From positions 1 through 64,000 of the forward strand of contig MCFE01000330.1 of the NCBI GenBank assembly GCA_002104905.1: DNA of 64,000 nt. The letters run 5' to 3'. The notes beneath the pieces are model-generated. The model saw only the letters and a program-made list of their open reading frames with translations. It ran no database searches and had not been told where the DNA came from. Below, in pieces: positions 28,685-62,569 of the stretch. Numbering within the stretch: the stretch's first letter is position 1; every line of letters starts with the position of its first letter. The position numbers were made by a program, and so were the translations under genes. The DNA is from Basidiobolus meristosporus CBS 931.73 (lineage: Eukaryota; Fungi; Basidiobolomycota).

Positions 28685-30355
28685 ATGACGTTTGACCTTC
28701 AGGCAATAGTGAGTGCATTGAAAAGCTCACTATCTACGGAGATACAGGAAATCATCCTTTTTTATGTTGGTGATGCGGTTCTATATTTCAACTACTTCCA
28801 AAGGCCAGGCCGTCTTTTCGAAACCCTGGTGATTGCACGGGGTGGACCAGGGGTTGTTTTGGAGGAAGCCATTAGAAGGGGCAACAAGCCACTTCTTCGG
28901 TGGCTTCTAACTGCCGTAAACTTTCCAATGGATTACTTGCTCACCAGTGCCTCCTATTATGGAGACCTAGGCGTACTATCCTACTTTATTAGCTTGATGG
29001 GAGATGACTACCAGATTTACGACACACCAGCCAAGCTCGTTTGTATATCACAAGGGAAGCTACACTTGCTGGAATACTTGATCGAAAAAAACCCGACTTT
29101 TAAACAAGGACCAGGTTGGGCCAGGTGTATTCACCAATGTATAATATATGGAATATCGAAATCTAGCAAAATTTACTCTTGGTACTTGAGAAAGCAAAGG
29201 ATTTGTCCCCGAGTAAGCAAAGAGGATCTCATCAAAGCATGTCTTCAGCATGACAATCTTCTTGGGGCTATAGAACTTGTTGGGAAACGAAGACCTACAG
29301 CATTAATGAAAGCTTTGAGAATGATCCCTTCAACATCGGAAGAAACATACCGAAGACTGGTTCTCAAATATGCCGGCGAAGAAAATATATTGACATCTAT
29401 TGCCAGAGCATGTGCAAGGCTGGGGTACATCGAAACCCTTGAGTCCCTGTTTAACGAGCCATACAACGTACATGTGGAGTCCGATTTCTTTTATGGCAAT
29501 CCCAATCTTGCTGTAGTGGAGGTCCTCCACAAGTATGCATCTCAACGGGATAGTATTTCTTGGCTGTGGTACAATGGCCACATCCGCAAAATCAAGTCTC
29601 GTTTCACAACCTACCAGACTCCCAAATGCTATCTAAAGCTCTTGAGAACATACACTGAATTCGATGTATGCTGTAACCGAAGTAATTGTTCACATAGCAC
29701 TGAACAGCAACGGGAGAATGTATTGATGTTTCTGGTTGATTTAGCTAAAATAACCTCGAAAACTCAGCTGCTCATCAAATATATCAAGTATGGGATCGCA
29801 TATGGAAGCTTACAACTGCTAAAAAAGATGGTCCCGTTATTGGGGGAAAGAGATTTGCAGAGTCTCCGACTCGAAATTACAGAAGGTCGGCTAAATATCT
29901 ATCGAAGTGCAAGGCCGCAGATTGTGGAGTATTTGTCGGATTTAGGAATAACTCAAGACACGAGGCTTGCTTCTCTGTGCGGTTGTTTTGACTTGGTATT
30001 TATCAAGAGCATTGCGGAAAAGGACCTGGTAACAGAGCTCAAAAACAATCGCTTGCTAGCCCCAAACTACCTGCAGCATTCTATTGTACGGGATGTTTGC
30101 TACGGAAATGGCCAATATTGGAAAGAAAGTGACTACTTGATGGGTTTTTTGCGCTTGACCCGCAATTTTGTTCCCAATCACAAATACTATTGGACAATTG
30201 GAAGCAATTGCGACAACTCTATTACTTTTTTGCCTGATCTTTGTTTTACTCTTTCATTTGTACAGCAAGTTTATTCATACCAGTTGGACTTGAGCCTTCA
30301 GATAGAGTCAGTTTTGTGGAAAAAAGCAATGTCATTTCTATTTCTTCATTATTAG
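28685..30355 (+). CDS. Intronless 556 aa paralog of 25817-27541 (copy 4)
   Basis: Colinear with copy 3 (MTFDLQ, LFYVGD, GGPG, KPLLRWLL, CPRVSKED, ARACARLGY, FNEPYNVHVE, VLHKYASQR). Its stop may lie slightly early relative to copy 3. Confidence 0.78.
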   Translation: MTFDLQAIVSALKSSLSTEIQEIILFYVGDAVLYFNYFQRPGRLFETLVIARGGPGVVLEEAIRRGNKPLLRWLLTAVNFPMDYLLTSASYYGDLGVLSYFISLMGDDYQIYDTPAKLVCISQGKLHLLEYLIEKNPTFKQGPGWARCIHQCIIYGISKSSKIYSWYLRKQRICPRVSKEDLIKACLQHDNLLGAIELVGKRRPTALMKALRMIPSTSEETYRRLVLKYAGEENILTSIARACARLGYIETLESLFNEPYNVHVESDFFYGNPNLAVVEVLHKYASQRDSISWLWYNGHIRKIKSRFTTYQTPKCYLKLLRTYTEFDVCCNRSNCSHSTEQQRENVLMFLVDLAKITSKTQLLIKYIKYGIAYGSLQLLKKMVPLLGERDLQSLRLEITEGRLNIYRSARPQIVEYLSDLGITQDTRLASLCGCFDLVFIKSIAEKDLVTELKNNRLLAPNYLQHSIVRDVCYGNGQYWKESDYLMGFLRLTRNFVPNHKYYWTIGSNCDNSITFLPDLCFTLSFVQQVYSYQLDLSLQIESVLWKKAMSFLFLHY

Positions 30356-31150: not shown

Positions 31151-31294
31151 CAACAAGTCCTGTATAGTGCAACCATACCATTTACCAAATGGTATTTCCC
31201 TTTTCTACCTCCCCTTGTGCCACTTGTATATTCCACAATACAATCACCTTACTTTATTAGCTTACCCATTACCTCCATGAGTATACTGCATAAA

Positions 31295-32026
31295 TGACTT
31301 GTTCTGTTGGATAGAGCCAGATTGAGCCATAAGTGCCAAACAGTGCCATAGTGTTCCAGAGTGGCAGAGCAGATCTAAACTTAGCCATACAATGTGATGT
31401 ATAATTCTACAACTTCACACAAAATAGCCACTGTGTTTCACCTCTTGTGCTGGAGAAATTCCATTTTTTGATCTTTTTTGGAGATCAATTTTGTGCATGG
31501 TGTGCAAGAGAACAGAAGGACTAAAGCATGCACTTGGTACTTAACACCCATGGCAGTCTGAAACCAGCTCCAGAGGTCTGTAACTTGTCACAAAAATGCA
31601 TGGCACTATCTTGGTCTGCTGATACTTTCAGGCATTATATCTAAATATTGGCCCTAGAGTAAAACATATACAAAGCACTTAAAGTGCCAGATAGTACCAG
31701 TAAACCAAGATAGTGCCATGCATTTATGCCAAGCGCTAAAGACCTATGAAGCTGGACTCTGAATGCAATGGGTGCAGAGTACTAGGTGCATGTCTTCAGT
31801 CCTTCTGTGCATCTATATATCAGGCACAAATTTGATCCCAAAAAAAAGGTCAATAAATGGATTCTCTCCAGCACAGTAGGTGAAACATAGGGGCTGCTTT
31901 GCATGAAGACAAATAATTATGTTTTACACTCTGTGACCAGGTGTAGGTCCACTTGGCCTCTATGGTACACCATGGCACTATTTGACACTCACAGCTCCAT
32001 ATGGCACTATCAAACTGAACAAGCCC
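31295..32026. mobile_element. Fold-back MITE of the PHIS (Pangu-like) family, degenerate copy
   Basis: 732 bp. Termini (T)GACTTGTTCTGTTGGATAG...CAAACTGAACAAGCCC. Long internal inverted arms homologous to 33152-33885. TSD eroded. Confidence 0.8.
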
Positions 32027-32234: not shown

Positions 32235-34020
32235 AGATTTGTTCCATTGTACTGTGCCAGGGTATGCAGCACAATCTGTGGTCTTGAAGAGCAATCAGGT
32301 GCAATGCTATAGCTACCAATAGGCATGATAGCACTTAGCCAGTTTCAAACTATGTGGGACAATCTTGCGTACTATGGCACAAACTGTCAAAATGAATGCT
32401 TTGCATCAACATTCAAAACTTAGCCAATTTTACTTGCTTAAAAAATAGTGTACCCTAACAGATTTTCTCTAACCAAAACATAACTAATCCCAGTTATGGT
32501 TTACTTTATCACTTCTCAGAATCTATTCTGGCTGTCACACCTGATCAATTTTTATGTGACCTTTATGTTATCAACTTATCTGCAAAGCCTTCACAGGTGA
32601 TAAATCATCTGAGATCTCTCCAACCACTAAGCAATTGCCAAGACATCAGCTAATTAATGATGTAATTCTCATGCATCTTATGCACCTATCAACACCCAAA
32701 CTGTGCTCAATTAATGCAGTCTCTTGGTGCTGACTAGTTTAACTTGATCAGAAAAGTATCCATAGAGTTTACTGAACCTTTTGGTTCAGTGTGTCTCTCA
32801 ACAAAATTAAGATTGTGTCTCAACAAAATTGAGAATTCCACAATTCCAATCTAGTTTTTACACAAGACTAGCATATCTAGCACTTCCAAGAACACCAAGC
32901 CTAACCTTCATAGTAAGTTAACTCTGTAGCCTTTATAGCCAAATCCAGCTATTTACTAGACCAATATTAGACCAAAATATTCTCTGCTACTACTTCAGCC
33001 ACTCTCTGACAATCCTAAGATTCTGCACTTCATTGTCCCTTAGGTGCATTTAAACCATTCAAGAGTTTTGTTACACTTTTCTCCTGGATACAACAATGAG
33101 GTTGGCAGAGATGATTGCACCAACTTGCAATGTTTGCATCACATGCACAATAGACTTGTTCCGTTGGATAGTGCCACATTGAGCCATGAGTGCCAAATGA
33201 TGCCATAGTGTGCCAGGGAGGCTAAGTGAGCCTATACTTGGCCACAGAGTGTGAAACATGTATCTGCATCTTCATGCAAAGCAGCCCCTGTGTTTCACCT
33301 GTGATGCAGGAGAAAATCCATTTTTTGACGTTTTTTTGTGGATCAATGTTATGCAGGATGTGTAAGAGCATAGAAGAACTGAAGACATGCATCAGGTACC
33401 CAATACCCATGGCACTCTGAATCTAGCTCCTGTGGCTTGTAACAAGTCACAACAATGCATGGCACTATCTTGGTCCACTGGTACTATCTGGCACTATATT
33501 TAATTATTAGCCCTAAAGTAAGATCTATACAAAGCACTTATAGTGCCAGATAGTACCAGTGGACTAAGATAGTGCCATGCATTGTTGTGACTTGTTACAA
33601 GCCACAGGAGCTAGATTCAGAGTGCCATGGGTATTGAGTACCAAATGCATATTTTCAATCCTTTTGTGCTCTTACATATCCTGCACAACATTGACCTAAA
33701 AAAAAAGGTCAAAAAATGGATTTTCTCCAACACAATGGGTGAAACACAGGGGCTGCTTTGCATGAAGATGCAGATCTATGTTTCATACACTGTGGCCAAG
33801 TATAGGCTCACTTAGCCTCCCTGGCACACTATGGCATCATTTGGCACTCATGGCTCAATGTGGCACTATCCAACGGAACAAGTCTAATCATATATCACTA
33901 TTATCATAGGTAAGATCTGGTACTCAGATATGTTTCTTCAACGTAAATGAAAATAAGTTCATATCACATTATAAACTACATTGATACTTGCCATTTTGGT
34001 TATCACCACCCCAATTCAGC
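32235..34020. mobile_element. Relic right end of a PHIS (Pangu-like) element (copy C), interrupted by a ~700 bp insert and a MITE
   Basis: Starts aat|AGATTTGTTCCATTGTACTGTGCC. Sequence at 32235-32390, 33095-33151 and 33889-34020 aligns with 58952-59290. Confidence 0.75.
33152..33885. mobile_element. Fold-back MITE (734 bp), TSD AAT
   Basis: aat|AGACTTGTTCCGTTGGATAGTGCC...GGCACTATCCAACGGAACAAGTCT|aat. Arms of 347 bp (33152-33498, 33539-33885) with a 40 bp spacer. Removing it restores the sequence seen at ~59155-59190. Confidence 0.95.
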
Positions 34021-34690: not shown

Positions 34691-36161
34691 TCTGTTGAAA
34701 CTTCAGTTGTACCTCAATTGCCAATTGTTTTGACCTATACAAGTCCCAATACCCAATACTAACATTAAGCCTATCCCCATATCCAACAAGTAACTCCATT
34801 AAAATACGCCACTCAATAAGTATTTCTGCTGTAACATTCTATTTCCATGACTTTGATAGGAACCCTACAGCTTTATGCCACTGTTCATTCACTGATTCCC
34901 ATATGTCCAGGTCTTCAGCCAGCACTACAAGGTCTAGCACCTCATCTGCAAGTCTTTGCAATAAATCCTTGCAATATTCAAGTGCATTTTCTTGAGCACT
35001 GTGCTTGGAGAAGTGCTGCAACCTCTTGGTGTGCCTAGTAATGCTCTAAAATTCCACTGAATGCATTGTGATAGCCATTTGAGTTCTTGACATTGCTACT
35101 TTGTCTGCCAGTGGTATCTTCCCTCCATCTACAATTGACAATGTGGAGGCTGTGATAGACAAATTGCCTTTCTCTGCAAACTCATGAACCTCACTGGAGT
35201 GTAGCTCAACTGGCTGTGCTTCCAACCCTTGTGAAAGCAGCTGTTTTCTTGTTGTTAATTCTTCTTGGCTAGGATGGGATTTAGTCTGTCCCAGGCCTAC
35301 TGCATTAATTGGCAAGAACTGCAGTTTTTTTCTCATGCTTCCCTGTCTCTGTCTTAGGTAGACTTTTTCCCTTTACCTTTTCCTCAATCATTGCCAAGTC
35401 TCTCACTGCTACTTTGTCTGAGTGCTTCTTGTATTGAAAACATTTTCTCCTTGATAAATGCAGCTCTGATCTATCAGTTTTGGCCTGATTGTCCCTTGCG
35501 GCATGCTGCAGTCAACCTGATGCTTGCCAGCCTTTAGGTGCTGGCATACTAGACCTCTAACAGCCTCTTGAATATTAGCCAACTCTTCATCATTGCACTC
35601 AGTAATGCCACAGAACTTCAATGTTTTCTGATTTTTTGCATTGGTACAAACACTACATTTCCTCCCTCCCAGGCTGTGATAGGTTTTTCTGTGGGCAAAA
35701 ACTTTGGGCACTGTTGTTGTGCTTCAAAGACTGTACAGTGTTCCTCTGCTGTTAAATTAGGGAAAAGCTCAATTCTTGGCTGTGATACTGAGCTACTTGA
35801 GTTGCTTTCTTGCAGCAAAGACACTGCTTTTCCTACCTGCAATATTGCCTGCTCTACACCTTTTATCCGCTTATCCTGTTTTGGACTATTTCCAATTTCT
35901 TTGGGCCATTGCATCTATCCAATCAGCCATTGCACCTAATTGCCTAATTTCTGCTTTGGTATGAGCTGTCAACAAACTTGACAATATGGGTGGTAGTGAT
36001 TCTATGATGGGCACTTGATGGTACTCAACTGAAGGTACTGCTTTTGCTATGCTCTCATCTGCCTCAGCAATATGGTCAACTTGTGGCTCTGCATAGATTC
36101 CCAATTGCCTACTTGACTAAGAACCTGAGGAATCTGCATTGTTACCTTCAGTGGGCATACT

Positions 36162-36889
36162 AAACCTGTATTGTAAGATAGTCCCACACTGAGCTATGAG
36201 TGCCAAATGATACCCTAGTGTACCAACAAGGCCAAGTGGACCTATACTTGGCCACAGAGTGTGGAATATAGTTCTTCATCTTCATACCAAGCAGCCCCTG
36301 TGTTTCACCCATTGTGCTGGAGAGAATCCACTTTTTGACCATTTTTTTGGGATTAATGTTATGCAGGATGTGTAAGAGCTCCAAGAAACTGAAGGCATGC
36401 ATCTGGCACTCAATACCCATGGCACTCTGAATATAGCTCCTGCAGCTTGTAACATGTCACAAAATACATGGCCCTATCTTGGTCCACTGGCACTATATGT
36501 CACTATAAGTGCTTTGTATAAGCTTTTGTTTAAGACTAATATTTAAGTATAGTACCTGAAAGTGCCAGTGGACCCAGATAGTGCTATGTATTTTGTGACA
36601 TGTTACAAGCTGCACAAGCTAGATTCAGAGTGCCATGGGTATTGGGTACCAGATACATATCTTCAGTCACTCTGCGCTCTTACACATCATGCATAGAATT
36701 GTTCCCAAAAAAAAAGGTCAAATAATGGTGTTTCCACAATGGGCAATACACAGGGGCTGCTTTGTATGAAGATGAAGAACTATATTTTGCACTCTGTGGT
36801 CAAGTTTAGGTCTGCTATGTTTCCCTGGCACACAATGGTACTATTTGGCTCTCATGGCTCAATATGGCACTATCCAACAGAATAGGTCT
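36162..36889. mobile_element. Fold-back MITE (728 bp), TSD ACT, degenerate
   Basis: act|AAACCTGTATTGTAAGATAG...CCAACAGAATAGGTCT|act. Internal inverted arms homologous to the other MITEs. Confidence 0.85.
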
Positions 36890-37029
36890 ACTGTTCACAG
36901 GGCCTTTTTTGATTGTAGCCCTGCTTGTTGCACTGAAATTCAATGCAGGCTGTAGTCTAAATGTTCATCTGCTGCTGTCAGTAGTGGGGTTTGGTTTGGA
37001 ACCAGACAACTTTTTGTTGTTTTTTGGCA

Positions 37030-39354
37030 GCATATATATGGAGGTGAGTCAAACCAAAGGGGAAATGGTGTTACACTAACATGGGTATATGGTGCCATAA
37101 CTTTATTTATAACACTTACTATGGTGGGTTAACATTAAATCTTACAATCATGTAGGTGCAATGTGTCAAATACAAGACTGTCTTAAATTCACACAAGTAT
37201 TGACAAAAAAGTGATATATCAGCATTACATTGTTGAATGTCAAACTGTTAGCCCTATGTACAAGGCTACTTTGATTCAATGCCATTAGAGAAGAGAAAAA
37301 AGACCATGTGGCTGTTGTAGAAAACCTCTTAGCCATGAAGCACACAGACAGCATAGGATAAATCACAAGGATCACAGCAAGTGTTTTGCCACACAAGTCA
37401 TATTTGACTAGTCACCTGTCACTACTGTACCAACAATAATTTGCCAGCCACTTAATACTCCTACAACAGCACCTAACCATACTTGTCACCTGGCACAAGC
37501 TGAGTCAGGTGAGTCTGAGATTCATTTAGGCTCACCTGAACCTTCTGAATATGGCATGCAGAGTGATAGCTCTGACAAAGAAGGCTCACTGATGGATTTT
37601 GAGCCTATCTTCCCAAACAACAGTACCCTCCATGAGCCTGGAAAAATCCCATTATGCAATCAGACAACAACCATTAAGAATGGCAAGGATACCTTATGGA
37701 GTCAAGTCAGCCCTGTAATTCATATACTGGAAAATGATGTGATCTTGTTGCTAGAGAAGTAGCACATTTCCACTAATATTAGTGATGAGAGCTCTGAGGA
37801 TTTACCACTAGTTCTTGCCAAGATCATCCCAGGATGTAACCTGCTGTGTATATGGTATAAGTGGACAACTGTCATTTGGCTGGCAACATAGGACACAGAG
37901 ACCATTCTGATACCAGCATGTGTTAACAGTTGCATGGCATTCACAGCAGAGAGTGCCACCATTGCAAGGTATCCAACTTGTCAGAAATCCACTGCCATTG
38001 GGGAAAACATTGTTTATACTTAGGATCTACTCCAGTAATACCCCATATAAAGAAGCTCATGGGGTCCAGCAAATATTGTCAAGCTATAAAGTATTGCACT
38101 CAGTAGCAATCAAGCATAAACATATCCAATATATTTGATGGCAAACATTGCAAACAGCTTAGAAACAAGGGCTACCATGAAGATATGTATGACCATACCA
38201 TTGCCTTGGCACTTGATGTATTCTCATTAGATAAGTACTCTACCAGCAAATCCTTCTGGCCACTGATTCTCATCAACCAGAATATGCTGCCTAATTTATG
38301 GTATCAGCAGGAATCTCATGGTAGTCTTACTGGTATCTGGGCTTAAATACTGTCCAGCCTGGATAGCTACCGGTATCCATTGCTAGATGAACTTCTATGC
38401 TTTCCAGCAGGATAACAGTAAATGGCGGTAATAGACTTGTTCTGTTGGATAGTGCCACATTGAGCCATGAGTGCCAAATGATGCCATAGTGTGCCAGAGA
38501 GGTAAAGTGAGCCTATACTTGGCCACAGAGTGAGAAACATAGCTCTGCATCTTCATGTAAAGCAGCCCCTGTGTTTCACCCATTGTGTTGGAGAAAATCC
38601 ATTTTTGACCTTTTTTTGTGGATCAATGTAGCTCAGGATGTGTAAGAGCACAGGAGACTGAAGATATGCGTCTGGTACTCAATACCCATGGCACTCTGAA
38701 TCTAGCTCCTGTAGCTTGTATCATGTCACAAAAATGAATGGCACTATCTTGGTCCACTGGTACTATCTGGCACTATATTTAAATATTAGACCTAATGTAA
38801 GATCTATACAAAGCACTTATAGTGCCAGACAGTACCAGTAGACCAAGATAGTGCCATTCATTTTTGTGACATGATACAAGCTACAGGAGCTAGATTTAGA
38901 GTGCCATGGGTATTGAGTACCAGATGCATATCTTCAATCTGCTTGTGCTCTAACACATCCTGCACAACATTGATCCAAAAAAAAAGGTCAAAAAATGGAT
39001 TTTCTCCAACACAATGGGTGAAACACAGGGGCTGCTTTGCATGAAGATGCAGAGCTATGTTTCACACTCTGTGGCCAGGTAGAGGCTCACTTGGCCTCTC
39101 TGGCACACTATGGCATCATTTGGCACTCATGGCTCAATGTGGCACTATCCAACGGAACAAGTCTAATGTCAAAGCACCTATTATTATCTGCATTGAGGAT
39201 ACCTCATCCATGAGCAAGATAGCTGGCTTTTCAGGTTACAATGGATGGTATTGATGTCAAATGTGTGAGATCCAGAGGATATATTCTATAATTCACACAC
39301 ATTATTATTACCCAAATACCAACACTAAGAGTATCATGCTCCCATAGATGGAAT
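37030..39354 (+). pseudogene. Degenerate CACTA/EnSpm (Transposase_21-like) transposase, interrupted by a MITE and by PHIS copy B
   Basis: Remnant motifs in order across stops and frameshifts: ACVNSCMAFT..PTCQK, IALSSNQA, PLILINQNMLPNLWY, LDSY.YPLLDEL, ICIEDTSSMSKIAGFSGYNGWY*CQMCEI, HYYYP. Confidence 0.7.
38433..39164. mobile_element. Fold-back MITE (732 bp), TSD AAT
   Basis: aat|AGACTTGTTCTGTTGGATAGTGCC...GGCACTATCCAACGGAACAAGTCT|aat. Near-palindromic and highly similar to 33152-33885. Confidence 0.95.
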
Positions 39355-41877
39355 AGACTTGTTCCATTAGATAGTGCCACATAGTTCAAGCTGTTGATAG
39401 TGCTGGATCAATCTGGCACTCTATGGCACTATCTGACACTCTGATTTCTAAGATTATGCCAGTGGTAGGATACAATTACTGGCATTTTGACACAATCTTA
39501 CTTATACTGCTCAGAACAGTGCTTTTCTTGCTGTATTTACTCATCATAATGCTCTAGACACATTTCTCTCAGTGGATGTCCTCTTGTATGAGTATATTGC
39601 ATATTAATAAGTATCTTAACTATTTTACCTATACTGCTGTTTTCTCCTACATATGACTTTCCTCCATATTTACCTGCTAATATGCAGAATCTCTGTAGAT
39701 ATCCAAATGCATGCTCTACTCTCAATCTGAAATGATGAAATATATCATTGTTGGGCTTCTGCTTCCTGCTGAGCACTCCATTCCTTGGCTTCCAATGGGC
39801 TGTAATACATTCTGGTCTCTGGCAATCCTCTCCTATATAAGCCTAGTCTATCTTAAATCTGTTCCCTCTACCATGTCCTGGATGATTCTCTACCCAGAGT
39901 GCTTTGTCATGCCTACTTCCAGCAAATGGCCCACTAAGCCAGATGATGTTACCCTCAATGTCAGACAGTGCTTGAAACTTCACACAGTGTGCCTTGTACT
40001 TGCCAGAATAAAAGTGCCTCTGCCCTCTAGAAGGTCTGTTAATCCTCATATTTCATAAAAGACCAGGACAATGCCAATACACTACTGTATAAGTATCCAA
40101 ATCCATCACTATGGCCCCTATACCAAGTCTCTACTCATCTCAAGTACAACCCAGACAAAACCCACCCCCCAGCTCACAAGCATGGTCTGGGTTGGAGAAG
40201 TTAATGTTGGATTCATTTGAGTTCTTGCCAAATGATTTAAGTATGGCCCAAGTGTCTATGATGTGCCTTCATACAGATATTTGGGCACTACTCATTAATC
40301 TAGCAGAACTAGATATCTCAGAGAGTCAACAGAGATGGAAGAACCTCAGTAGAAAGCTGTGGCATGAGTTCTTCATCAAGATGCCAGCAGATATAGCTAA
40401 GTGGCTTCCAAGTGCAATATACATAAGACTCATCCAGGCAACAGTTCCAAAGTATCAAACAGAGGGTAAGTAAATACTTTGAGGAATCAGAAGGTGAGCT
40501 TCAAGATGAAGAATACAGACCGCAAGCAACAGCATCTAGATCATACCAACATGCCTTGCTGGTTTTCTTACCATCCTTTGCAACTTCAGCATGCTTGTGC
40601 ACATCAGTCCAAACTATGCCAACACCCTTCACAAGAGTGCCCTGCATCAATTCTATGTGTGTTGGGTCAACATGCACACCTCAGAGGAAAACCACCAGAA
40701 CTTGCCAAATTGCTCATTTAGACACAAGTCCATTGGAATGGGCCAAGCTGTGTCAACAAGCAGCTTCACATTGAACTCAGTCAAGGGCCATGGCAGCTCA
40801 TCAAGTTGTGCCTGCACATGCCATTACACCTGACCATCAGTAAGTTTCTTCTGGTGCACTGACTAATGATAACCCACATGAAGTTCCACCACTACCAGAG
40901 CCTTTGGCAAGTAAAAGAAAGCGTCAGCACATAGCACTGCTAGCCAGTTCAGTAGCATCCTCTGGAGCAATTGAGCACAGTCAAGCTGCAGCAGTGCACT
41001 CATCCACTAGGAGGCAGAACACTAACTACAAATACACAGGTAGCCAAGATGATAGGCAACAAGGAAGTAGTTTAGGTGTGCAAAGTGAATCACTACCAAA
41101 GGCTTCAGTAGTAGTCCCTGTGAGAAAAAAACCTAGGAGAAGATGAAGCAATTGCATTGCATTGCTATTATTTGTTGTGATCCAAACCATATACTTTTTT
41201 TTGCAATCTAATCAAGCCATTGCAAATCAGTGTCCACTCAATTTTTGATAAAAGCAATACTAAGGTTGCTTCACAATTGACACAGAATCCCTATAAATAA
41301 ATACCCTGCATATATATACATCATCTGTAACACCAGTGCAGCCATTTGATCTGTTTTGCACCTATATGGTTGGTTGAATGCTAGCTGTAACACCTTGCCC
41401 AATCACTAGGTTCAGGGACTTACTTGCTCAATTGATAAAATGGGCTATTTGATGGCTACTCAGGTAGCTTGGGTATTGGTCAAGCTGCCAATTAGGGGCT
41501 GACAGCTTCAGGATACTTTTGGACCAGTTAATCACTGAGATACCATTCAATTGGAGTGATGGTAGCCAAAATGGTAAGTACCAGTGCAGTGTATAGTATG
41601 AGACACATTCATTTCTATTTGCATTCAAGAAACATATCCAAATACCAGACTTTACCAACCATTATAGCGGTATCTAATGGTGCATGTGCTGCAAATACTA
41701 TGAGTTGGTGCAATCAGCATTGTGCCAGATTGTGCCATTGCATGCAAGATTGTCCCACGTGGTGTGAAATTGTCCAAGAGCAATCCGGCCAACTGGTAGC
41801 TACATTTTTGCAATGGATTGTTCTTTGAGACCGTAGATTGCACTGTGCACCCTGGCATGGTACAATGGAACAAGTCT
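39355..41877. mobile_element. PHIS (Pangu-like) element copy B, internally deleted and non-autonomous, TSD AAT
   Basis: aat|AGACTTGTTCCATTAGATAG...TACAATGGAACAAGTCT|aat. Broken transposase 3' half on the minus strand (39537-40049) and broken ORF2 on the plus strand (40111-41146). CpG almost entirely lost. Confidence 0.9.
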
Positions 41878-42900: not shown

Positions 42901-44105
42901 GTACTGTTGTAAGAGTTTTGGAGATATTGGAAGTGTTTGGGGGAACAAGTATATTATGTGATTTTCAATTGGTGATTTATTGAATGCACAAGTAGTATTT
43001 ATATTTTTACATGGTTTTGGCATAACAAACACATAGAATAGGCTCATGATGATCCAAAGAACATGTGAGCAAGATTTGGGGCTGCTTGGACAACTTTGAG
43101 GATTCTCATTTTCTGGGTACCTGATAGTTTGGTGAAAAATTTTTTAAGTAAATCCCAACAAGGAATTTGGTCAGAATTCTCTAGGATTTGAAGGTAATAA
43201 TTTATGTGACTAAGTTAGTGAATATTTAGGTCAAGTCAATACTTTTACAACATACTATATGGTTACATATATATGGAAGTGAGCCAAACCAAACAGGAAA
43301 TAGTGACACATACATCTGCTTATGTCACATCTTTATTTGTAATGCCTACCATGGTGGGGCACCGTAGAATCCTACAATCATGGAGGTGTCATGTCATAAA
43401 GTCAAGACTGTTTTAAAAATACATCAGTATTCACAAAAAAGTGATAAAATAGTGTTATGTTGTTTAGTGTCAAACTGTTTGTCACATTGACAGGACCACT
43501 TTGATTTAGTACCATATAAGAAGAGCAAAGCAACTGTGGGGCTATTGTGGCAAGCCTCTAAGCCATGAAGCTCACAGTTGGAACAGCAAGTACTTCAAGG
43601 ATTGTGGTCAGTGTTTTGCTACAGAAGTCATAGTGGAGCAATCATCAGACACTACTGGACCAACAATGTCTTGCCAGCTAATTGATAATTCTCAAACACT
43701 ACCTAGTCATAACTGGTTCCTTGCATAAGCTGATTCAGGTCAGTTTGTGATGTCTTTTAGCCCACCTCAGCCTTTTAAATATGGCTACTGAGTGACAGTA
43801 ACATCCCAACATTCAATGGGACTACACCTGTAGAAAAAGAGCCAAGAACACTTTGTGGAGACAAGGGAGCCAAGTAACTCATTTAATGGAGAAAGATATG
43901 TTGTTGAGCATACAGAAGTAGTAGACTTGTTCCGTTGGATAGTGCCACATAGTGCCAGCCGGTTTATAGTGCCGGATCGATCTGGCACTCTACGGCACTA
44001 TCTGGCACTATAATTTCTACCATGATGTCAGTGGTATGATACAGTTACTGGTAATTTTACTCAATCTTACTTATGTTGCTCAGAATAGTGCTTTCCTTGC
44101 TTTAT

Positions 44106-44990
44106 TTACTCTTCATAATGCTCCAGACACATATCTCTCAGTGGATGTCTTCTTGTATGAACATACTGTGCATTGATAAGTATCTTAACTATTTTACCTA
44201 TTCTGCTGTTTTCTCCTATATATGACTTTCCTCTGTATTTACCTGCCAATATGCTGAATCTCTTCAGATATCCAAATGTGTGCTCTACCCTTACTCTGAA
44301 ATGATTAAATATCTCATTGTAGAGCTTCTGCTTCCTGCTAAGCACACCATTCCTTGGCTTCCTATAAGCTGTAATACATCCTAATCTCTGACAATCCTCT
44401 CCTATATAGGCCAAGTCTGCCATACATTTCTCCCCTCTACTGAATTCAGGATGATTCTCTACCCAGAGTGCTTTGTCATGCCTACTTCCAGCAAATGGCC
44501 CACTAAACCAGATGATGTTACCCTCAATGTCAGACAGTGCTTGAAACTTCACACAGTGTGCCTTGTACTTGCCAGAATAAAAGTGCCTCTGCCCTCTAGA
44601 AGGTCTGTTAATCCTCACTGGGAAGGTATCCAAAATACTCCTGATATGGAACCTGTTGCTGAACACTCTGGGATATGGAAGTCTATTGGAGCTTCTGAAC
44701 CTAGTATTCCAAGCTTGCTCTAAGTCATTCATACCCTCTGCAAGGTGGTTCTCCATTGCTGTCAGCTGGGAATGAAAGCTTCTAGGACTTTTGTTGCCAT
44801 GGATAGTGGGATGAAACCTTGTAGGGCAATAGTTCTTGTAATAGCAGAGAAGCTTAACAAGGGATCTCCTTGAGTAGATTGGGGTTGATGGTCCACAGTA
44901 CTTGGAATAGATCTCCTCCAGTGTGTCAAAAGGAAATCCAGTGGTAGTGATGGGATTGATGAGAAAAGACCATTCAGATGAGTAAGTCAT
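44106..44990 (-). CDS. DDE transposase (DDE_Tnp_4 / PIF-Harbinger-like), 294 aa, intact
   Basis: HTH-like N-terminus (RSLVKLLCYYKNY). Catalytic motifs ILDTFPVRINRP, FYSGKYKAHCVKFQ, GPFAGSRHD, MADLAYIG, RVRVEHTFGYLKRFSIL. Confidence 0.92.
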   Translation of the reverse strand: MTYSSEWSFLINPITTTGFPFDTLEEIYSKYCGPSTPIYSRRSLVKLLCYYKNYCPTRFHPTIHGNKSPRSFHSQLTAMENHLAEGMNDLEQAWNTRFRSSNRLPYPRVFSNRFHIRSILDTFPVRINRPSRGQRHFYSGKYKAHCVKFQALSDIEGNIIWFSGPFAGSRHDKALWVENHPEFSRGEKCMADLAYIGEDCQRLGCITAYRKPRNGVLSRKQKLYNEIFNHFRVRVEHTFGYLKRFSILAGKYRGKSYIGENSRIGKIVKILINAQYVHTRRHPLRDMCLEHYEE

Positions 44991-45349
44991 ATTAAAATTG
45001 ATGGATGATCGTATGGAGGCGCTTTGAATTGATTTGGCGCGATCTGCGTTATTTATCTGATTTTTAACACATTATGGTTAAATCTCCATCAATTGCCATG
45101 TATCCCATCATTATGTCGCAAAAATCATCCGCAAACAATGCCTTGGTACTTTTATTGATGCTTTAATCATAGGTCTATAATCAAATAGGAAATCTGCAAT
45201 TGATGTGATCTGATCCGTGTCAACACAATCCAAGATGCATCATGCATAATATATGGAAAATTCAACAATCACTTTAGTTTTCATATATATTTCATATAAG
45301 ACCAGGTTGATGCCAATATACTGCTGTATAAGTATCCAAATCCGTTGCT

Positions 45350-46621
45350 ATGGTCCCCATACCAAGCCTCAACTCATCTTTAGTACAACCCAGACAAAAC
45401 CCATCCCCCAGCTCACTAGCGCGGTCCGGACCGGAGAAGTCGATGTCGGATCCGTTTGAGTTCTTGCCAAATGATTTTAGTATGGCCCAAGTGTCTATGA
45501 TGAGCCTTCATACAGATATTTGGGCACTACTGATTAATCTAGCAGAACTAGATACCTCAGAGAGTCAACAAAGATGGAAGAATTTGAGTAGAAAGCTGTG
45601 GCATGAGTTCTACATCAAGATGCCAGCCGATGTATGTAAAAAGATATATAACAAGACAAGTATTGAAATCAAGAATGAGCTGAGAGTAAGGGGATTTGAC
45701 GAGGAAGCCGCGCGGGAACAATTTTGCGCGCAATTTGCACAGTACGGGCCGGACGCGTCCGTTTGTGCCTCAACTTTGGGAACCAAAGAGATTTTGAATG
45801 AGTTTTTGCCTCAAATGACTAATGTACTATGTGATATATTAGTAGAGCTAAGTGGCTTCCGAGAGCAATATACACAGGACTCATCCAGGCAACAGCTCCA
45901 AAGTATCAGACAGAGGGTAAGTGAATACCTTGAGGAATCAGATGGTGAGCTTCAGGAGGAAGAATACAGACCGCAAGCAACATCGTCCAGATTGCGCCAG
46001 CACGCCTTGCTGGATTCCCTACCATCTCTTGCAACCACAGCGCGCTGGCGCACGTCAGTCCAGACCACGCCAACACCCTTTACCAGAATGCCCCGCGTTG
46101 AGTCAACGCGCATTGAGTCAACGCGCATCGGGTCAACATGCGCGCTTCAGAGCAAAACTACCAGAACTCGCTAAACTGCTCATTTAGACACAAGTCCATT
46201 GGAGCGGACCGAGTCGCGTCAACATGCGGCATCACATCAAACTCAGCCAAGGGCCATCTCAACGCGTCAAGGCGCGCCTGCGCGTGCCGTTTTGCCTGAC
46301 CATCAGCGAGTTACTTCTGGTGAACTGACTGATAATGACCAACATGAAGTGACTCAACCACCAGAGCCCTTGGCAAGTAAAAGAACGTGTCAGCGCGTGG
46401 CACTACAGGCCGGTTCAGTTGGTTCAGTTGGTTCAGTTGGAGCGATTCAGTGCGGCCAAGCTTCAGCATTGCACTCATCAACTAGGAGGCAAAATACTGA
46501 CTACGAATACACAAGTAGCCAAGATGATAGTCAGCCAGGAAGTAGTATAGGTGTGCAAAGTGAGTCACTACCAAATGCTTCAGTAGTAATCCCTGTGAGA
46601 AACAAACCCAGGAGAAGATGA
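45350..46621 (+). pseudogene. PHIS ORF2 (putative DNA-binding partner, 423 codons) with one premature TAA at 46172-46174
   Basis: Track ORFs 45350-46174 and 46199-46621 are in the same frame. Copy E has CAA (Gln) at the stop codon (GAACTCGCCAAACTG). SQQRWKNLSRKLWHEFY resembles the third helix of Myb/SANT/trihelix domains (motif-level inference). Confidence 0.75.
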
Positions 46622-47633
46622 TGCGATCGCTTTGAATCGCTCACATTTGTAATGATCCCGACAACCCTTTTTTTTTGCGATCCAAATTGAGCCATTGCAA
46701 ATCAGTGATCATCATATTTTTGATATAAGTAATATCAAGGTCGTCTCACATTTGAGACAGAACCCCTATAAATAAACACCCTGCATATATATACGTCATC
46801 TGTAATACCAGTGCAGCTATTGGATCTGTTTTGCACCTACACAATCGCTTGCGTGCTAGCTATGACACCTTGCCCAATCACTAGGATCAGGGATTTACTT
46901 GCTCAATGGGCAAAATGAGATATTTGATGGCAAATCAGGTAGCTTTTTCAGTAGTCAATGAGCCAATTGGGGGCTGCCAGCTTCAGGATACTTTTGGACC
47001 AATTAACCACTGAGATACCGTCCAATTGGAGTGAGGGTAACCAAAATGGTAAGTATCAGTGTAGTTTATAGTGCGATACACATTTATTTCCATTGACATT
47101 AAAGAAACATATCCAAATACCGGATTTTACCTGCCATTATAGCGGTATCCAATCGCGCACGTGATGCAAGCATTACGAGTTGGCGCGATCATTTGCGCCA
47201 ACCTCATCGTGTCAGATTGTGCCATAGTGTGCAAGATCGTCCCGCATAGTGCGAAATTGTCCAAGAACAATCCTGCCTTCTGGTAGCTATGATATCACGC
47301 CCGATTGCTCTTTGCAACCGCGGATTGCGCCGCGCACCCTGGCACGGTACGATGGAACAAGTCTAGTGTACTGCTACTAACATCAGTAATGGTTGCTTTG
47401 AAGTTTTACTGCTACTTCTTGCCAAAATTATTGTAATATTGTCCTGGACTCAGACAAGCAAGCAGATTTTGGGTCAATATTGGTATGCTGAGAAAGTATC
47501 TCAAGAACAGCATACCAAAGGCAGAAAAAAAAGGTTGCACCAGCTAAGAACCAGTAACTTTCTCAGGATCCTATTAGAAGCAGTGCCAAAAGTTCCAAAC
47601 AAGTGTCAAAGAGACATCAGGTAGCTGGAAAAG

Positions 47634-55745: not shown

Positions 55746-58700
55746 GCGCATCCAGAGGGGTGTCTAAAGAGTAAAGTGGTCTCTTAGAGAGGACTTTTCC
55801 AACTGGAAGGTGGAGGTTTTCTTGCAGACTTAAATTGGATTCTAATGAGCTTGACAGTGTCTGTACTGATGTAGTACCAATCAATGTCAGAATAACCAGC
55901 AGTGCAGGTTATGTTTGGGAAATCTTATAGCCTTTAGACTAGTAATTATAGTGTGGATATTTTAGAAAGTGCAGCACCTGTGAGAAGCTCATGTGACCTG
56001 ACTGTCTTGTTCAAAAGACTCATACAATCAAAGTCTCCATAGTAATGCTTGCAATAGAGGCCTAAAATATATGCAATTGGACTCTTTGGATCATAATTCC
56101 TTAAGTACTGCTTCAAATGAGTTGTACCTTAAAACATGCATGACTACTGGGCATTCTACTGGTCTTAATATACTTAGGTGGGCTGCTTTTCAGGATCTTG
56201 GGCAACTGCCCTTCAAAGTTGGAAATTCTTGATCTTTCACTTATGTGTTTTAATGATAAAAAGCAAGATAAAGAAATCAATGCACATTGGTTTTGAGATA
56301 TTGTTGTAATCAAATACTTTCTATTACCAGATACAACAATTATCTCTCATAGCATTGGTACCATTTATATTTTTGCTGAGCAAGTACTCTGCCAGCCAAT
56401 CCTGCTGGCCACTTATTCTCATCACTGTGAATCTGCCCCAATCTTACCAAAGTAGAGTAGAAAGCTGATGGTGGTCTCATTGATACCGGGACCATAATCA
56501 CTGTCCAACCTGCACTACAACCAGTATCTCTTTCTAGACAGGTTCTGTATGCAATTTAGCAGGATACTGGTAATTGACAGTGATGTCAAAGTACATATTA
56601 TTATTGGAATTGAAGATATACTAGCCATCAGCAAGATAACTGGCTCTTCTGGGAAATGGATAGTACTGCTCTCAGATGTCTGAGATCCAGGGGCCTTACT
56701 CCACAACTCAAAGACACTATTATTATGAAAGCACCCATACTCAAGACAGCATCTTCCCACAGAGAGAACATACTAAAGTCAGCATGCAATTACAGCAAAG
56801 TTAGTATTTGACTTGTTGCATTGTACTGTGCCAGGGTGTGCAGCGCAATCTGCAGTCTTTAAGAACTATTGGGTGCAATATTGAAGCTACCAGTAGACAG
56901 GATTGCTCTTGGACAATTTTGTACCATGTGGGACAATCTTGCACACTATGGCAAAATCCGACACAATGAGGTTGGCATGAATGATTGCACCCACTTGTAA
57001 TGTTTGCATCACATGCGCAATTGGATACTGCTATTATGGTAGGTAAAATCTGGTATTTGGATATGTTTCTTCAATGCAAATGGAAATAAGTGCATATCAC
57101 ACTATAAACTACACTAATACCTACCATTTTGGTTACCATCACTCCAATTGGATGGTATCTCAGTGGTTAATTGGTCCAAAAGTATCCTGAAGCTTTCAGC
57201 CCCCAATTGGCTCTTTGACCAATACACAAGCTACCTGATCTGCCATCAAATATTCCATTTTGCCCATTAAGCAAGTAAATCCCTGATCCTAGTGATTGGA
57301 CAAGGTGTCATAGCCAGCACACAATCAATTGTATGGGTGCAAATCAGATCAGATGGCTGCACTGGTGCCACAGAGGATGTATACATATGCAGGGTGTTTA
57401 TTCATAGGGGTCCTGTCTTGAATGTGTGACAGCCTTGATATTGTTTATATCTGAAATTTAGTGATCACTGATTTGAGATGGCCCAATGCGGATTGCAAAA
57501 AAAAGTGTTGTTTGGATCGATACGGATAATAGCAATTCAATGCAATTGCATCATCTCCTAGGCTTTTTTCTCACAGGGATTACTACTGAAGCATTTGGTA
57601 GTGATTAACTTTGCACACCTAAACTACTTTCTTGTTGACTGTCCTCTTGGCTACTTGTGTATTTATAGTCAGTATTTTGCCTCCTAGTTGATGAGTGCAA
57701 TGCTGCAGCTTGGCCATGCTGAGTTGCACCAGATGATGCAACTGAGCTGGCCTGCAGTGCTATGCGCTGACAAATTCTTTTCTTGCCAAAGGCTCTGGTG
57801 GTGGAGGCAATCATGTGGGTCATCATCCGTCAGTTCACCAGAAGTAACTTGTTGATGGTCAGGTGTAATGGCACACACAGACACAACTTGATGCACTGGC
57901 ATGGCCCTTGGCTGAGTTCAATGTGATACTGCTTGTTGACGCAACTTGGCCCGCTCCAATGGTCTTGTGTCTTTTTGAGCAGTCTGGCGGGTTCTGGTGG
58001 TTTTGCTCTGAAGCACACACGTTGACCCAATATGCATTGAGTCAATGTGAAGCACTCTTGTGAAGGGTGATGGCATAGTTTGGACTGATGGGTGCCGGCA
58101 CACTGAAGTTGTAAGGGATGGTAAGGAATCCAGCAAGGTGTGCTGGCGCAATCTAGACAATGTTGTTTGCGGTTTGTATTCCTCCTCTTGGAGCTCACAT
58201 TCTGATTCCTCAGGGTGTTCACTTACCCTCTGTCTAATACTTTGAAACTGTTGCCTGGATGAGTCTTGTGTATATTGCTCTTGGAAGCCACTTAGCTCTA
58301 CAAATATATAATGTAATACATCAGTCATTTGAGGTAAAAACTCATTCAAAATCCCTTTGGTTCCCTAATTCAGTGTCCAAAGGGCGCATCCAGCCTGTAC
58401 TGAGCAAATTGCATGCAAAATCATTCCCCTGTGGCTTCCTCATCAAATCCCCTCACTCTCAGCTCATTCTTGATTTTAATACTTCTCTTGTTATATATCT
58501 TCTTATATACATCCGCTGGCATCTTGATGTAGAACTCATGCCACAGCTTTCTACTCAGGCTCTTCCATCTCTGTTGACTCTCCAAGGTATCTAGTTCTGC
58601 AAGATTAATGAGTAGTGCCCAAATATCTGTATGAAGGCTCATCATAGATACTAGGGCCATACTGAAATCATTTGGCAAGAACTCAAACAGATCCAACATT

Positions 58701-59693
58701 GCCTTTTCCAGTCTGGACCGTGCTTGTGAGCTGGGGGATGGGTTTTATCTGGGTTAAGCTAAAGGTGAGTTGAGACTTGGTATAGGGACCATAGTGACGG
58801 ATTTGGATACTTATACAGTAGTGTATTGGCATCAACCTGGTCTTATATGAGAAATATATGACACCTAATGTGATTGTTGAATTTTCCATACATTATGCAT
58901 AATGCATCTTGGATTGCATTGACATGGATCAAATGACATCAATTACAGATTAGACTTGTTCCATTGTACCGTGCCAGGGCGTGCAGCGCAATCCGCAGTT
59001 GTAAAGAACAATTGGGCGCAATATTATAGCTACCAGAAGGAAGGATTGTTCCTGGACAATTTTGCACTATGCGGGCCAATCTTGCACACTATGGCACAAT
59101 CTGACATGATAAGGTCGGAACGGATGATTGCACCAACTTGTAATGTTTGCATCACGTGCGCAATTGGATACCGCCATTATGGCAGGTAAAATCCAGTATT
59201 TGGATATGTTTCTTTAATGTAAATGGAAATAAATGTGTATCACACTATAAACTACAGTAATACTTACCATTTTGGTTACCCTCACTCCAGTTGGACAGTA
59301 TCTCAGTGGTTAATTGGTCCAAAAGTATCCTGAAGCTGGCAGCCCCCAATTGGCTCTTTGACCAATACACAAGCTACCTGATTTGCCATCAAATATCCCA
59401 TTTTGCTCATTGAGCAAGTAAATCCCTGATCCTAGTGATTGGACAAGGTGTCATAGCCAGCACGCAAGCAATTGTGTAGGTGCAAAACAGATCCAATAGC
59501 TGCACTGGTATTACAGATGACATATATATATGCAGGGTGTTTATTTATAGGGGTTCTGTCTCAAATATGAGATGACCTTGATATTACTTATATCAAAAAT
59601 TTGATGGTCACTGATTTGCAATGGCTTGATTTGGATTGCAAAAAAAAAGGGTTGTTGGGATCATTACAAATGTGAGCAATTCAAAGCAATTGC

Positions 59694-60941
59694 ATCATCT
59701 TCTCCTGGGTTTTTTTCTCACAGGGATTACTACTGAAGCATTTGGTAGTGACTCACTTTGCACACCTATACTACTTCCTGGCTGACTATCATCTTGGCTA
59801 CTTGTGTATTTGTAGTCAGTATTTTGCCTCCTAGTTGATGAGTGCAATGCTACAGCTTGGCCACGCTAAATTGCTCCGACTGAACCAACTGAACCGGCCT
59901 GTAGTGCCACGTGCTGACACGTTCTTTTACTTGCCAAGGGCACCGGTGCTTGAGGCACTTCATGTTGGTCATCATCAGTCAGTTCACCAGAAGTAACTTG
60001 CTGATGGTCAGGCAAAATGGCACGCGCAGGTGTGCCTTGACACGTTGAGATGGCCCTTGGCTGAGTTTGATGTGATGCTGCAAGTTGACGCAACTTGGTC
60101 CGCTCCAATGGACTTGTGTCTAAATGAGCAGTTTGGCGAGTTCTTGTATTTTTGCTCTGAAGTGCGCGCGTTGACCCGACGCACGTTGACTCAATGCGGG
60201 GTGTTCTAGTAAAGGGTGTTGGCGTACTCTGGACTGACATGCGCAGGCGCGCTGTGGTTGCAAGAGATGGTAGGGAATCCAGCAAGGCATGCTGGCACAA
60301 TCTGGATGATGTTGCTTGTGGTCTGTATTCTTCCTCCTGAAGCTCACCATCTGATTCCTCAAGGTATTCACTTACCCTCTGTCTGATGCTTTGGAGCTGT
60401 TGCCTGTATGAGCCCTGTGTATATTGCTCTTAGAAGCCACTTAGCTCTACTAATATATCACGTAGTACATTAGTCATTTGAGGCAAAAACTCATTCAAAA
60501 TCTCTCAGGTTCCCAAAGTTGAGGCATGAACGGACGCGTCCAGCCCATACTGTGCAAATTGCGTGCAAAATTGCTCCCGCGCGGCTTCTTTGTCAAATCC
60601 CCTCACTCTCAGCTCATTCTTGATTTCAATACTTGTCTTGTATATATCTTTTTACTTACATTGGCCGGCATCTTGATGTAGAACTCATGCCACAGCTTTC
60701 TACTCAAATTCTTCCATCTTTGTCGGCTCTCTGAGGTATCTAGTTCTGCTAGATTAATCAGTAGTGCCCAAATATCTGTATGAAGGCTCATCATAGACAC
60801 TTGGGCCATACTAAAATCATTTGGCAAGAACTTGAACGGATCCAACACCAACTTTTCCGGTCCGGACCGTGCTTGTGAGCTGGGGGATGGGTTTTGTCTG
60901 GGTTGTACTGAAGATGAGTTGAGGCTTGGTATGGGGACCAT
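59694..60941 (-). pseudogene. PHIS ORF2 of copy E, frameshifted
   Basis: Fragments 60609-60941 and 59866-60300 match ORF2 of copy A. The frame breaks after KKIY. Confidence 0.75.
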
Positions 60942-61300
60942 AGCAACAGATTTGGATATTTATACAGCAGTATATTGGCATCAACCTGGTCTTATATGAA
61001 ATACATATGAAAACTAATGTGATTGTTGTATTTTCCATATATTATGCATGATGCATCTTGGATTGTGTTGACACAGATCAGATCACATCAATTGCAGATT
61101 TCCTATATGATTATAGACCTATGATTAAAGCATCAATAAAAGTACCAAGGCATTGTTTGCGGATGACTTTTGCAACATAATGATGGGATACATGGCAATT
61201 GATGGAGATTTAACCATAATGTATTAAAAATCAGATAAATAAGGTGGATTGTGCCAAATCAATTCAAACCACCTTAATACAATCATCCACCAATTTCAAT

Positions 61301-62185: not shown

Positions 62186-62569
62186 ATAAAGCAAGGAAAG
62201 CACTATTCTGAGCAGCATAAGTAAGATTGAGTAAAATTACCAGTAACTGTATCATACCACAGGCATCATGGTAGAAATTATAGTGCCAGATAGTGCCGTA
62301 GAGTGCCAGATTGATCCGGCACCATAAACAGGCTGGCACTATGTGGCACTATCCAACAGAACAAGTCTATTTCCTATTTGATTATAGACTTGTGAGTAGA
62401 ACATCAATAAAAAACCCAGTCATTGTTTGAGGATGATTTTTGCAACATAATGATGGGATACATGGCAATTGATGGAGATTTAATCATAATGCATGGAAAA
62501 TCAGATAAATAAGGCTGATTGTGCCAAATCAAATCAAAGCATCTCAGCCTGATCCTTTCCAATTTTAAT

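Follow-up and report, generated by a model that had tools for sequence, protein, structure and literature searches.

This analysis concerns a 64,000-nucleotide (nt) stretch of the genome of the fungus Basidiobolus meristosporus CBS 931.73 (contig MCFE01000330.1; hereafter the window), and specifically a DNA transposon in which a transposase gene wholly free of CpG dinucleotides adjoins segments that are rich in them. Four copies of this element (A–D) from the one window, together with one 1250-bp contig from a sister lineage (L001), form the basis of the comparisons described below. Copy A is the least decayed of the family copies in the window, and a self-comparison of the window also revealed smaller fragments and derived pieces resembling miniature inverted-repeat transposable elements (MITEs). 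Judged by its domain, its ends and its target duplication, element A is a member of PIF/Harbinger. Specifically, its transposase matches DDE_Tnp_4 (PF13359) with E = 8.7e-24 over profile positions 1–153 of 158, a match shared by the transposase of copy B, and the element is bounded by 11-bp terminal inverted repeats (AGACTTGTTCC and, at the opposite end, GGAACAAGTCT) and by a 3-bp target-site duplication (TSD).

PIF/Harbinger elements combine a DDE_Tnp_4 transposase with a second, Myb/SANT-like open reading frame (ORF), and their usual target duplication is TWA. Element A resembles them in its DDE_Tnp_4 domain, its two divergent ORFs, its short inverted ends, its 3-bp TSD and its repeated subterminal motifs. 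It differs in that its second frame, ORF2, has neither a Myb/SANT match in Pfam nor a database homologue, and in that the observed TSDs (AGT for copy A, ATT for copy B) depart from TWA. To our knowledge, no member of this superfamily has been described in which CpG-free coding segments and CpG-island segments form such a mosaic. The positions of all features, including untranslated regions (UTRs), are collected in Table 1 along with CpG counts, GC fractions, observed/expected (o/e) CpG ratios and the use of AGA/AGG (AGR) or CGN codons for Arg.

Table 1. Features of the window, numbered from the first nucleotide of the 64,000-nt stretch
Feature	Position	Strand	Remarks
Copy A, PIF/Harbinger DNA transposon	43923–47364	+	11-bp inverted ends; 3-bp TSD AGT; 106 CpG
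Terminal/subterminal region beside transposase 3′ end	43923–44000	+	repeated TAGTGCC/GGCACTA motifs; 5 CpG
Transposase 3′ UTR	43994–44105	-	non-coding; CpG-free
Transposase ORF	44106–44990	-	294 aa; DDE_Tnp_4; 0 CpG
Divergent intergenic promoter/leader between transposase and ORF2	44991–45442	.	9 CpG in 44991–45349, ~13 up to 45440
ORF2	45443–46621	+	single 393-codon frame; divergent from transposase
ORF2 CpG-poor zone 1	45443–45699	+	GC 0.39; 3 CpG; Arg 4/4 AGR
ORF2 CpG-dense linker	45700–45762	+	11 CpG in 63 nt; GC 0.63; o/e 1.75; palindromes TTGCGCGCAA and GGACGCGTCC
ORF2 CpG-poor zone 2	45763–45969	+	one CpG (45860), private to copy A
ORF2 CpG-island-like zone	45970–46455	+	486 nt; GC 0.56; o/e 1.03; 38 CpG; Arg CGN 13, AGR 5; low-complexity
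ORF2 C-terminal tail, CpG-poor	46456–46621	+	one CpG, private to copy A
3′ non-coding part and terminus	46622–47364	+	33 CpG; o/e 0.93; dense cluster 47141–47364 (21 CpG)
Copy B	58952–62368	-	94% identical to A; TSD ATT; nested in copy C; 54 CpG
Copy C	56810–63627	-	two pieces (56810–58951, 62369–63627) split by B; 21 CpG; ORFs broken
Copy D	39355–41877	+	oldest; internal deletions; 6 CpG
RFC1	5683–7911	-	742 aa; 100% identical to B. meristosporus CBS 931.73 replication factor C large subunit

CpG content of the transposase gene and ORF2

By direct count, the transposase ORF of copy A contains no CpG in 885 nt. All 28 of its Arg codons are AGA (16) or AGG (12), no NCG codon is used, and none of the 64 C-ending codons stands before a G-starting codon, despite the presence of 65 codons that begin with G. 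These figures reproduce the observation, made in an earlier note on this DNA, from which the analysis proceeds, as do the 2 CpG found in each of the other full transposase copies (61244–62185 in copy B and within 62369–63627 in copy C), all of them near the 3′ end of the gene. Computed against the codon-shuffled controls that the same note had called for, the depletion is pronounced. Encoding the same protein with host codon usage gives 41.2 ± 5.0 CpG (minimum of 21 in 5000 simulations), and permuting the gene's own synonymous codons gives 12.2 ± 2.6, with none of 5000 permutations reaching zero. Since the GpC o/e is normal (0.91) and GC at third codon positions is ~45%, the bias is specific to CpG. 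The rest of element A contains 106 CpG at an o/e of 0.83.

The CpG-free gap is wider than the ORF itself, spanning 1017 nt (43993 to 45010) as compared with a maximum of 449 nt among the ordinary genes in the first 30 kb of the window. Past the transposase stop codon, the distance from its first base to the nearest CpG is 113 nt, and in the sister lineage it is 105 nt. The joint chance that both 3′ UTRs would be CpG-free is ~1e-4, which points to a regional effect, for example a methylated gene body, and not only to an effect at the level of codons. The subterminal TAGTGCC/GGCACTA motif that follows, along with its adjoining CpG, is also present in L001.

With respect to ORF2, the segment 45690–46460 contains 50 CpG in 771 nt (o/e 0.95), which is exactly the number that had been counted by hand, and the two segments described in the earlier note as helical (45460–45690 and 45780–45960) contain one CpG each. 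The contrast it drew between CpG-poor helical segments and CpG-rich linkers is thus borne out, and it extends to codon choice. Taken together, the three CpG-poor zones (GC 0.39–0.44) have 5 CpG, two of them private to copy A, and encode Arg with 12 AGR codons and one CGN codon, whereas the linker and the 486-nt zone (GC 0.56–0.63, o/e 1.0–1.75) use 5 AGR and 14 CGN codons (Fisher p = 3e-4). The island-like zones of element A have a GC content of 56–63% and an o/e of 1.0–1.75. The 486-nt zone at 45970–46455 qualifies as a CpG island in the sense of Gardiner-Garden and Frommer (at least 200 bp, GC of at least 50%, o/e of at least 0.6), a label that we use here in its compositional sense only.

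The identity of the ORF2 product could be narrowed only slightly. A Pfam search (E ≤ 0.1) returned nothing but one match at chance level, a database search for homologues returned none, and feature-based leads to Myb/MADF clusters were weak (scores of 0.63–0.67). Its N-terminal part is predicted to be helical, and the single-sequence AlphaFold2 model was poor (pLDDT 52). In copy A the frame carries a private TAA at 46172–46174, where copies B and C read CAA; because of this nonsense codon, copy A is not autonomous by itself. Two sequences within the ORF2 frame, GTAAGG (45686–45691) and GTAAGT (45918–45923), resemble fungal 5′ splice sites and lie at edges of the CpG-rich zones.

The CpG-rich parts are also distinctive in the words from which they are built. 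GCGC occurs 23 times in element A versus 5.3 expected from the CpG count, and the host half shows no such excess (62 versus 61). The motif GGCGCGATC is found twice in copy A, at 45036–45044 (upstream of the transposase, ~50 nt from its ATG) and at 47182–47190, and its reverse complement occurs in L001 (~139–147) at an equal distance upstream of the ATG. In addition, TCAACGCG occurs three times on the plus strand and four times over both strands, and GGTTCAGTT occurs three times in the CpG-rich zone of ORF2. This zone also includes three 15-nt tandem units, two of which read GAGTCAACGCGCAT and the third of which is degenerate (46094–46108 region). The tandem repeats at 46094–46108 and 46412–46420 vary in unit number, with copies B and C having one unit fewer of each. 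Candidate motifs of the element are GGCGCGATC, TCAACGCG, TTGCGCGCAA and TAGTGCCGG. As a separate observation, the GGCGCGATC site reads TTTGGCGCG at 45033, which we take to match the E2F-type consensus TTTSGCGC, and ACGCGT, which resembles an MluI box, is present at 45753 and 46262; these sequences may point to promoter elements of the cell-cycle type.

CpG decay among the copies and conservation in a sister lineage

The four copies form a series of progressive CpG loss, with counts of 106, 54, 21 and 6 in A, B, C and D, respectively, and retained fractions of inferred ancestral CpG of 0.66, 0.39, 0.14 and 0.04. At almost every CpG site that varies among the copies, the alternative is TG or CA. 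Private change outside CpG, scored for A, B and C, amounts to 1.3%, 1.9% and 9.1%, and in copies B and C CpG decays ~20–50 times faster than other sites, in keeping with the claim that CpG loss to TG/CA far exceeds change elsewhere. The outcomes are evenly divided between the strands (TG:CA of 29:30 in B, 40:40 in C and 35:32 in D), and genome-wide, most of the ~200 contig variants are C>T changes (66) or G>A changes (67). A runs test on the copies found no excess of strand-coherent runs of decayed CpG. This symmetric pattern is the footprint that would be expected from deamination of 5-methylcytosine (5mC) at symmetrically methylated CpG. Repeat-induced point mutation (RIP) of the Neurospora type, or RIP-like bursts, was also considered and rejected, as the target is CpG in every flanking context, same-strand runs are not in excess and the loss is gradual with age.

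The decay differs in extent along the branches. What is left of the element in copy D (the 3′ half of the transposase, the C-terminal part of ORF2 and the 3′ end) has TG or CA at positions where A has CG. Copy B has lost ~45–60% of its CpG, and its transposase ORF remains open with its DDE_Tnp_4 match, while its ORF2 has a frameshift and a stop. Copy A, on the other hand, keeps 17 of 18 CpGs whose ancestry was judged without reference to A, as opposed to 17 of 31 for copy B judged in the same manner. Given that A's branch has 1.3% change outside CpG, this direct observation of island retention indicates that the CpG-rich parts have not been hypermutated in the lineage that propagates, and it suggests that CpG decay begins once a copy is trapped. 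Dense CpGs were kept more often than sparse ones in copy B (15/22 versus 2/9, p = 0.04), an effect that is gone in copy C. Biased creation of CpG in A's lineage was rejected, since private gains (~12 in A, 7–8 in B, 3–5 in C) are similar among the copies and within the range for neutral transitions at TG/CA. As for the family at large, 23,197 contig pieces from a DNA sequencing run of this organism were placed on the element, which indicates that it is very abundant genome-wide.

Transposase relatives had to be sought by an exhaustive HMMER search, as a look-up of the exact protein returned no record and a word-based search gave 3 matches. The closest relative in the database (P0001) is a protein 62–63% identical to the copy A transposase and encoded on L001, which is a Logan contig of a different run. 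The 885 nt of the gene contain 1 CpG (o/e 0.03), with none at codon junctions (12.2 expected), and the flanks (365 nt) contain 9 CpG. Identity between the two genes at 4-fold degenerate sites is only 44%, a value near saturation, and AGA and AGG are swapped in 13 of 21 aligned pairs of Arg codons, with CGN appearing in only one. Avoidance of CpG in both lineages despite near-saturated synonymous sites indicates that the state is maintained and is not a relic that has yet to be refilled. Moreover, more distant relatives (37–43% identity), which come from other sources, show CpG o/e values of 0.83–1.5 and use CGN codons, so that the bias is not imposed by the protein family. Taken together, these results confirm the CpG-free state, which is extreme in statistical terms and has been maintained in evolution.

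A second Basidiobolus sample with the same species label (runs X5 and X6) yielded only diverged pieces of the element, mostly below 90% identity. These lie mainly over the transposase part and over the tail of ORF2 (the latter at 85% identity or more), with little or nothing on the CpG-rich zones. Either these zones evolve much faster, or a different subfamily is present in that sample.

The wider window gives the mosaic its context. Positions 1–30000 carry ordinary genes at a CpG o/e of 0.6–0.9, positions 30001–64000 carry transposon debris at 0.02–0.15, and the compositional boundary between the two, near 30.4 kb, is sharp. Within the debris the only CpG-rich exceptions are 45001–47400 and 57000–61000, both of which are copies of this element. 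The earlier note had presented the transposase gene as the anomaly in a CpG-rich transposon; the contrast within the element holds, but against surroundings that are almost free of CpG it is the CpG-rich segments of the young copies that stand out, and not the transposase ORF.

In addition to RFC1, the gene-rich half encodes a UBA/TPR protein and two SMP-30-like paralogues. The latter are diverged tandem genes of the SMP-30/gluconolactonase type (12550–13548 and 16161–17165, 68% nt identity), and a second diverged tandem pair consists of long ORFs without a Pfam match (25817–27541 and 28685–30355, 71% nt identity). Long terminal repeat pairs in the window, examined as potential young elements, are all old. 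Four repeats of ~730 bp (31287–32023, 33144–33886, 36158–36894 and 38429–39169) share 71–91% identity and match one another in both orientations, in the manner of fold-back elements. In at least two of them, both termini consist of the first 35 bp from the 5′ end of Harbinger, and the four are probably non-autonomous derivatives (MITEs) of the Harbinger family.

Origin of the CpG mosaic

In our view, the reading that best accounts for these data, to which we assign a probability of roughly 0.55, is that the parts of the element encoding folded protein, while under purifying selection, have come to the CpG equilibrium that methylated DNA attains, and that decay spares the islands in the lineage that propagates. 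Transposon-dense DNA of this genome undergoes CpG-specific, strand-symmetric C→T mutation, presumably by deamination of 5mC. The transposase transcription unit with its 3′ UTR, together with the tail of ORF2 and its two helical zones, would have been driven to CpG equilibrium and held there. Purifying selection would filter the result, with synonymous and junction CpGs lost and Arg ending as AGA/AGG, and the coding sequence would thereby become immune to host CpG mutagenesis, whether by this passive route or by selection among lineages. The CpG-rich parts (the leader, the 3′ part and, within ORF2, the 63-nt linker and the low-complexity region) are GC-rich, island-like and stable along the propagating lineage, and would decay only once a copy is caught in heterochromatin. 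Persistence of the islands would likely reflect the fact that only lineages with unmethylated islands and intact CpG-bearing cis motifs leave descendants. The counts, the decay series and the conservation in the sister lineage are direct observations; methylation as their cause, and this reason for the persistence of the islands, are what we infer.

This account bears on two claims of the earlier note. Its statement that random decay cannot explain the codon pattern is too strong, since CpG-specific decay combined with purifying selection arrives at the same end through synonymous CGR→AGR changes. Together with a steady loss of lineages hit at CGN codons, such changes suffice to produce the AGR-only state, so that adaptive mutation-proofing is not needed. 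Its related proposal of long-term recoding of the essential domains fares better in part: the CpG-free state is old and maintained (protein identity of 62% and 4-fold site identity of 44% to L001) and absent from distant relatives, but adaptive selection is not required.

Several points nonetheless weigh against our reading. The presence of 5mC is deduced from the mutation spectrum alone. Regional methylation accounts poorly for the CpG-dense linker, a mere 63 nt, that separates two CpG-free zones of a single gene, and it leaves the close fit of the zone boundaries to protein constraint unexplained. A propagating lineage that was never methylated should regain CpG in its transposase, and none has been regained; a fine-scale heterogeneity of mutation pressure or of selection is then required inside propagating copies. 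The basis is narrow, consisting of the copies and the single sister contig defined at the outset, and copy A itself is non-autonomous. A search of the literature for published Basidiobolus 5mC data or a methylome, or for described CpG-free transposases in fungi, returned nothing specific.

The difficulty posed by the zone boundaries pulls toward selection at the level of codons or motifs, as they track protein constraint at a scale of 60–500 nt and the CpG-rich parts do not resemble host DNA. One form of such selection would be an adaptive two-tier design, which we regard as possible, if tentative, in which selection among lineages has recoded the essential protein domains for mutational robustness and the CG-rich patches are positively maintained functional modules. 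The patches could serve in methylation-sensing control, as binding sites for an anti-silencing protein of the element or of the host, or in density-based repulsion of methylation. In its favor, the CpG-free zones coincide with folded or conserved protein parts, the CpG-rich ones fall on linker and low-complexity sequence of that same gene, and the choice of Arg codon switches within ORF2. The islands exceed the host average in both GC and o/e, the GCGC excess is not shared by the host, the sister lineage keeps GGCGCGATC at an unchanged distance from the ATG, and TCAACGCG is repeated. Retention of dense CpGs in copy B is also suggestive. Nonetheless, codon recoding does not predict that in each of the two lineages the CpG-free zone also takes in ~110 nt of 3′ UTR, which is non-coding, and AGR codons can be reached without selection for robustness, given time. 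Part of the motif repetition is accounted for by tandem duplication, the density effect is seen in one copy and vanishes in copy C, the private CpG gains fit neutral transitions, and ORF2 has no detectable similarity to DNA-binding or anti-silencing proteins. The idea that CG-rich patches are actively kept, with Spm and VANC offered as precedents, thus has hints in its favor (the GCGC excess, the conserved GGCGCGATC and the dense-CpG retention in copy B), but the search for a TnpA- or VANC-related protein was negative, with ORF2 lacking similarity to any family searched. A broader statement, that B. meristosporus transposons keep their protein-relevant segments strictly CpG-free, and thus neither mutated nor methylated, and positively maintain GCGC-packed islands in dispensable coding and terminal DNA as control modules that hold new copies free of methylation or sense their epigenetic state, all as a two-tier answer to a defence by CpG methylation and deamination, strikes us as doubtful.

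Another reading is that CpG is selected against so that methylation itself is evaded, with a CpG-free transposase unit that can be neither methylated nor made to nucleate or maintain silencing, and with mutational robustness as a by-product. The contiguous 1017-nt block, composed of ORF and 3′ UTR and covering both in each lineage, fits such an explanation, as does the upkeep of avoidance through near-saturating synonymous divergence. The CpG-free segments are, moreover, those most similar to the old copies (88–94% versus ~80%) and would be the best targets for homology-guided silencing. However, the adjoining leader/promoter retains 9 CpG in 359 nt, which places the gene within the reach of methylation, and CpG islands lie inside the transcribed body of ORF2 itself, and we consider this explanation unlikely. 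More improbable still, and largely refuted, is the reading that the mosaic reflects a recent chimera of an old CpG-depleted transposase with newly acquired CpG-rich ORF2 and ends, or simply the AT-leaning codon usage ordinary for transposable elements (TEs). The difference in GC between the two kinds of segment (0.39–0.44 versus 0.56–0.63), the lack of ORF2 homologues and the finding that sequence of at least 85% identity in the second Basidiobolus sample comes mainly from the transposase part would agree with it. A recent chimera is made unlikely by copy D, the oldest (10–16% divergence outside CpG), which already joins the transposase 3′ half to the ORF2 C-terminal part and a 3′ end of the CpG-rich type, and by L001, where CpG-bearing flanks surround a CpG-free gene. 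In addition, CpG-poor and CpG-rich zones of ORF2 alternate within one reading frame. AT bias, in turn, is at odds with the normal GpC o/e, the GC content at third positions and the avoidance of CpG at codon junctions, all of which mark the bias as specific to CpG.

Parallels and significance

Decay of CpG in methylated repeats is textbook knowledge, and mammalian LINE-1 and other TEs of CpG-methylated genomes have a CpG-rich promoter or 5′ UTR, a CpG-poor body and age-linked CpG decay. On general knowledge, these would be the closest parallel for the compositional architecture of element A, which resembles them in its age-linked loss of CG to TG/CA, in the contrast between a CpG-poor body and a CpG-rich regulatory part, and in young copies that stand as islands in depleted DNA. 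The differences are nonetheless considerable. Depletion is total in element A (0 of ~41 expected) and partial in LINE-1, and element A is a DNA transposon in an early-diverging fungus. Its islands lie inside the coding region of a second protein as well as at both ends, with zone boundaries within the ORF at 60–500 nt, and its mosaic persists across a sister lineage (in L001, the gene and 365 nt of flanks).

Among fungi, Neurospora RIP and the CpG/TCG-biased hypermutation of some basidiomycete TEs also cause C→T changes in repeats. The likeness lies in C→T mutation of repeated DNA that gives rise to domains depleted of the target dinucleotide. Here the target is CpG in all contexts and not CpA, and the 1:1 ratio of TG to CA, the lack of strand-coherent runs and the gradual, age-scaled loss fit site-by-site deamination better than bursts. 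With respect to maize Spm/En and Arabidopsis VANDAL/VANC, the likeness is conceptual only, in the shared idea that CG- or motif-rich, non-essential element DNA would mediate epigenetic state, with short motifs clustered outside the conserved coding parts. Spm/En belongs to CACTA and VANDAL to Mutator, as opposed to PIF/Harbinger, and element A, which is known from sequence alone, has no detectable TnpA or VANC homologue.

Basidiobolus is an early-diverging fungus (Zoopagomycota) that is better known for N6-methyladenine (6mA). The present data document CpG decay at an extreme in such an organism, with TE-rich DNA at an o/e of 0.02–0.15 and an intact gene that has 0 of ~41 expected CpGs. The element also amounts to a natural experiment, as CpG-free and island segments coexist in one 3.4-kb unit, and even in one reading frame, past the point of synonymous saturation. 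It thereby raises the questions of whether transposons can evolve sequences robust to a mutagenic host defence, whether CpG density can shield DNA from methylation outside vertebrates, and how methylation is targeted in Zoopagomycota. Even if only passive mutation and purifying selection are at work, the mosaic would still be a strong indirect marker of heavy and long-standing CpG methylation of repeats in this lineage.

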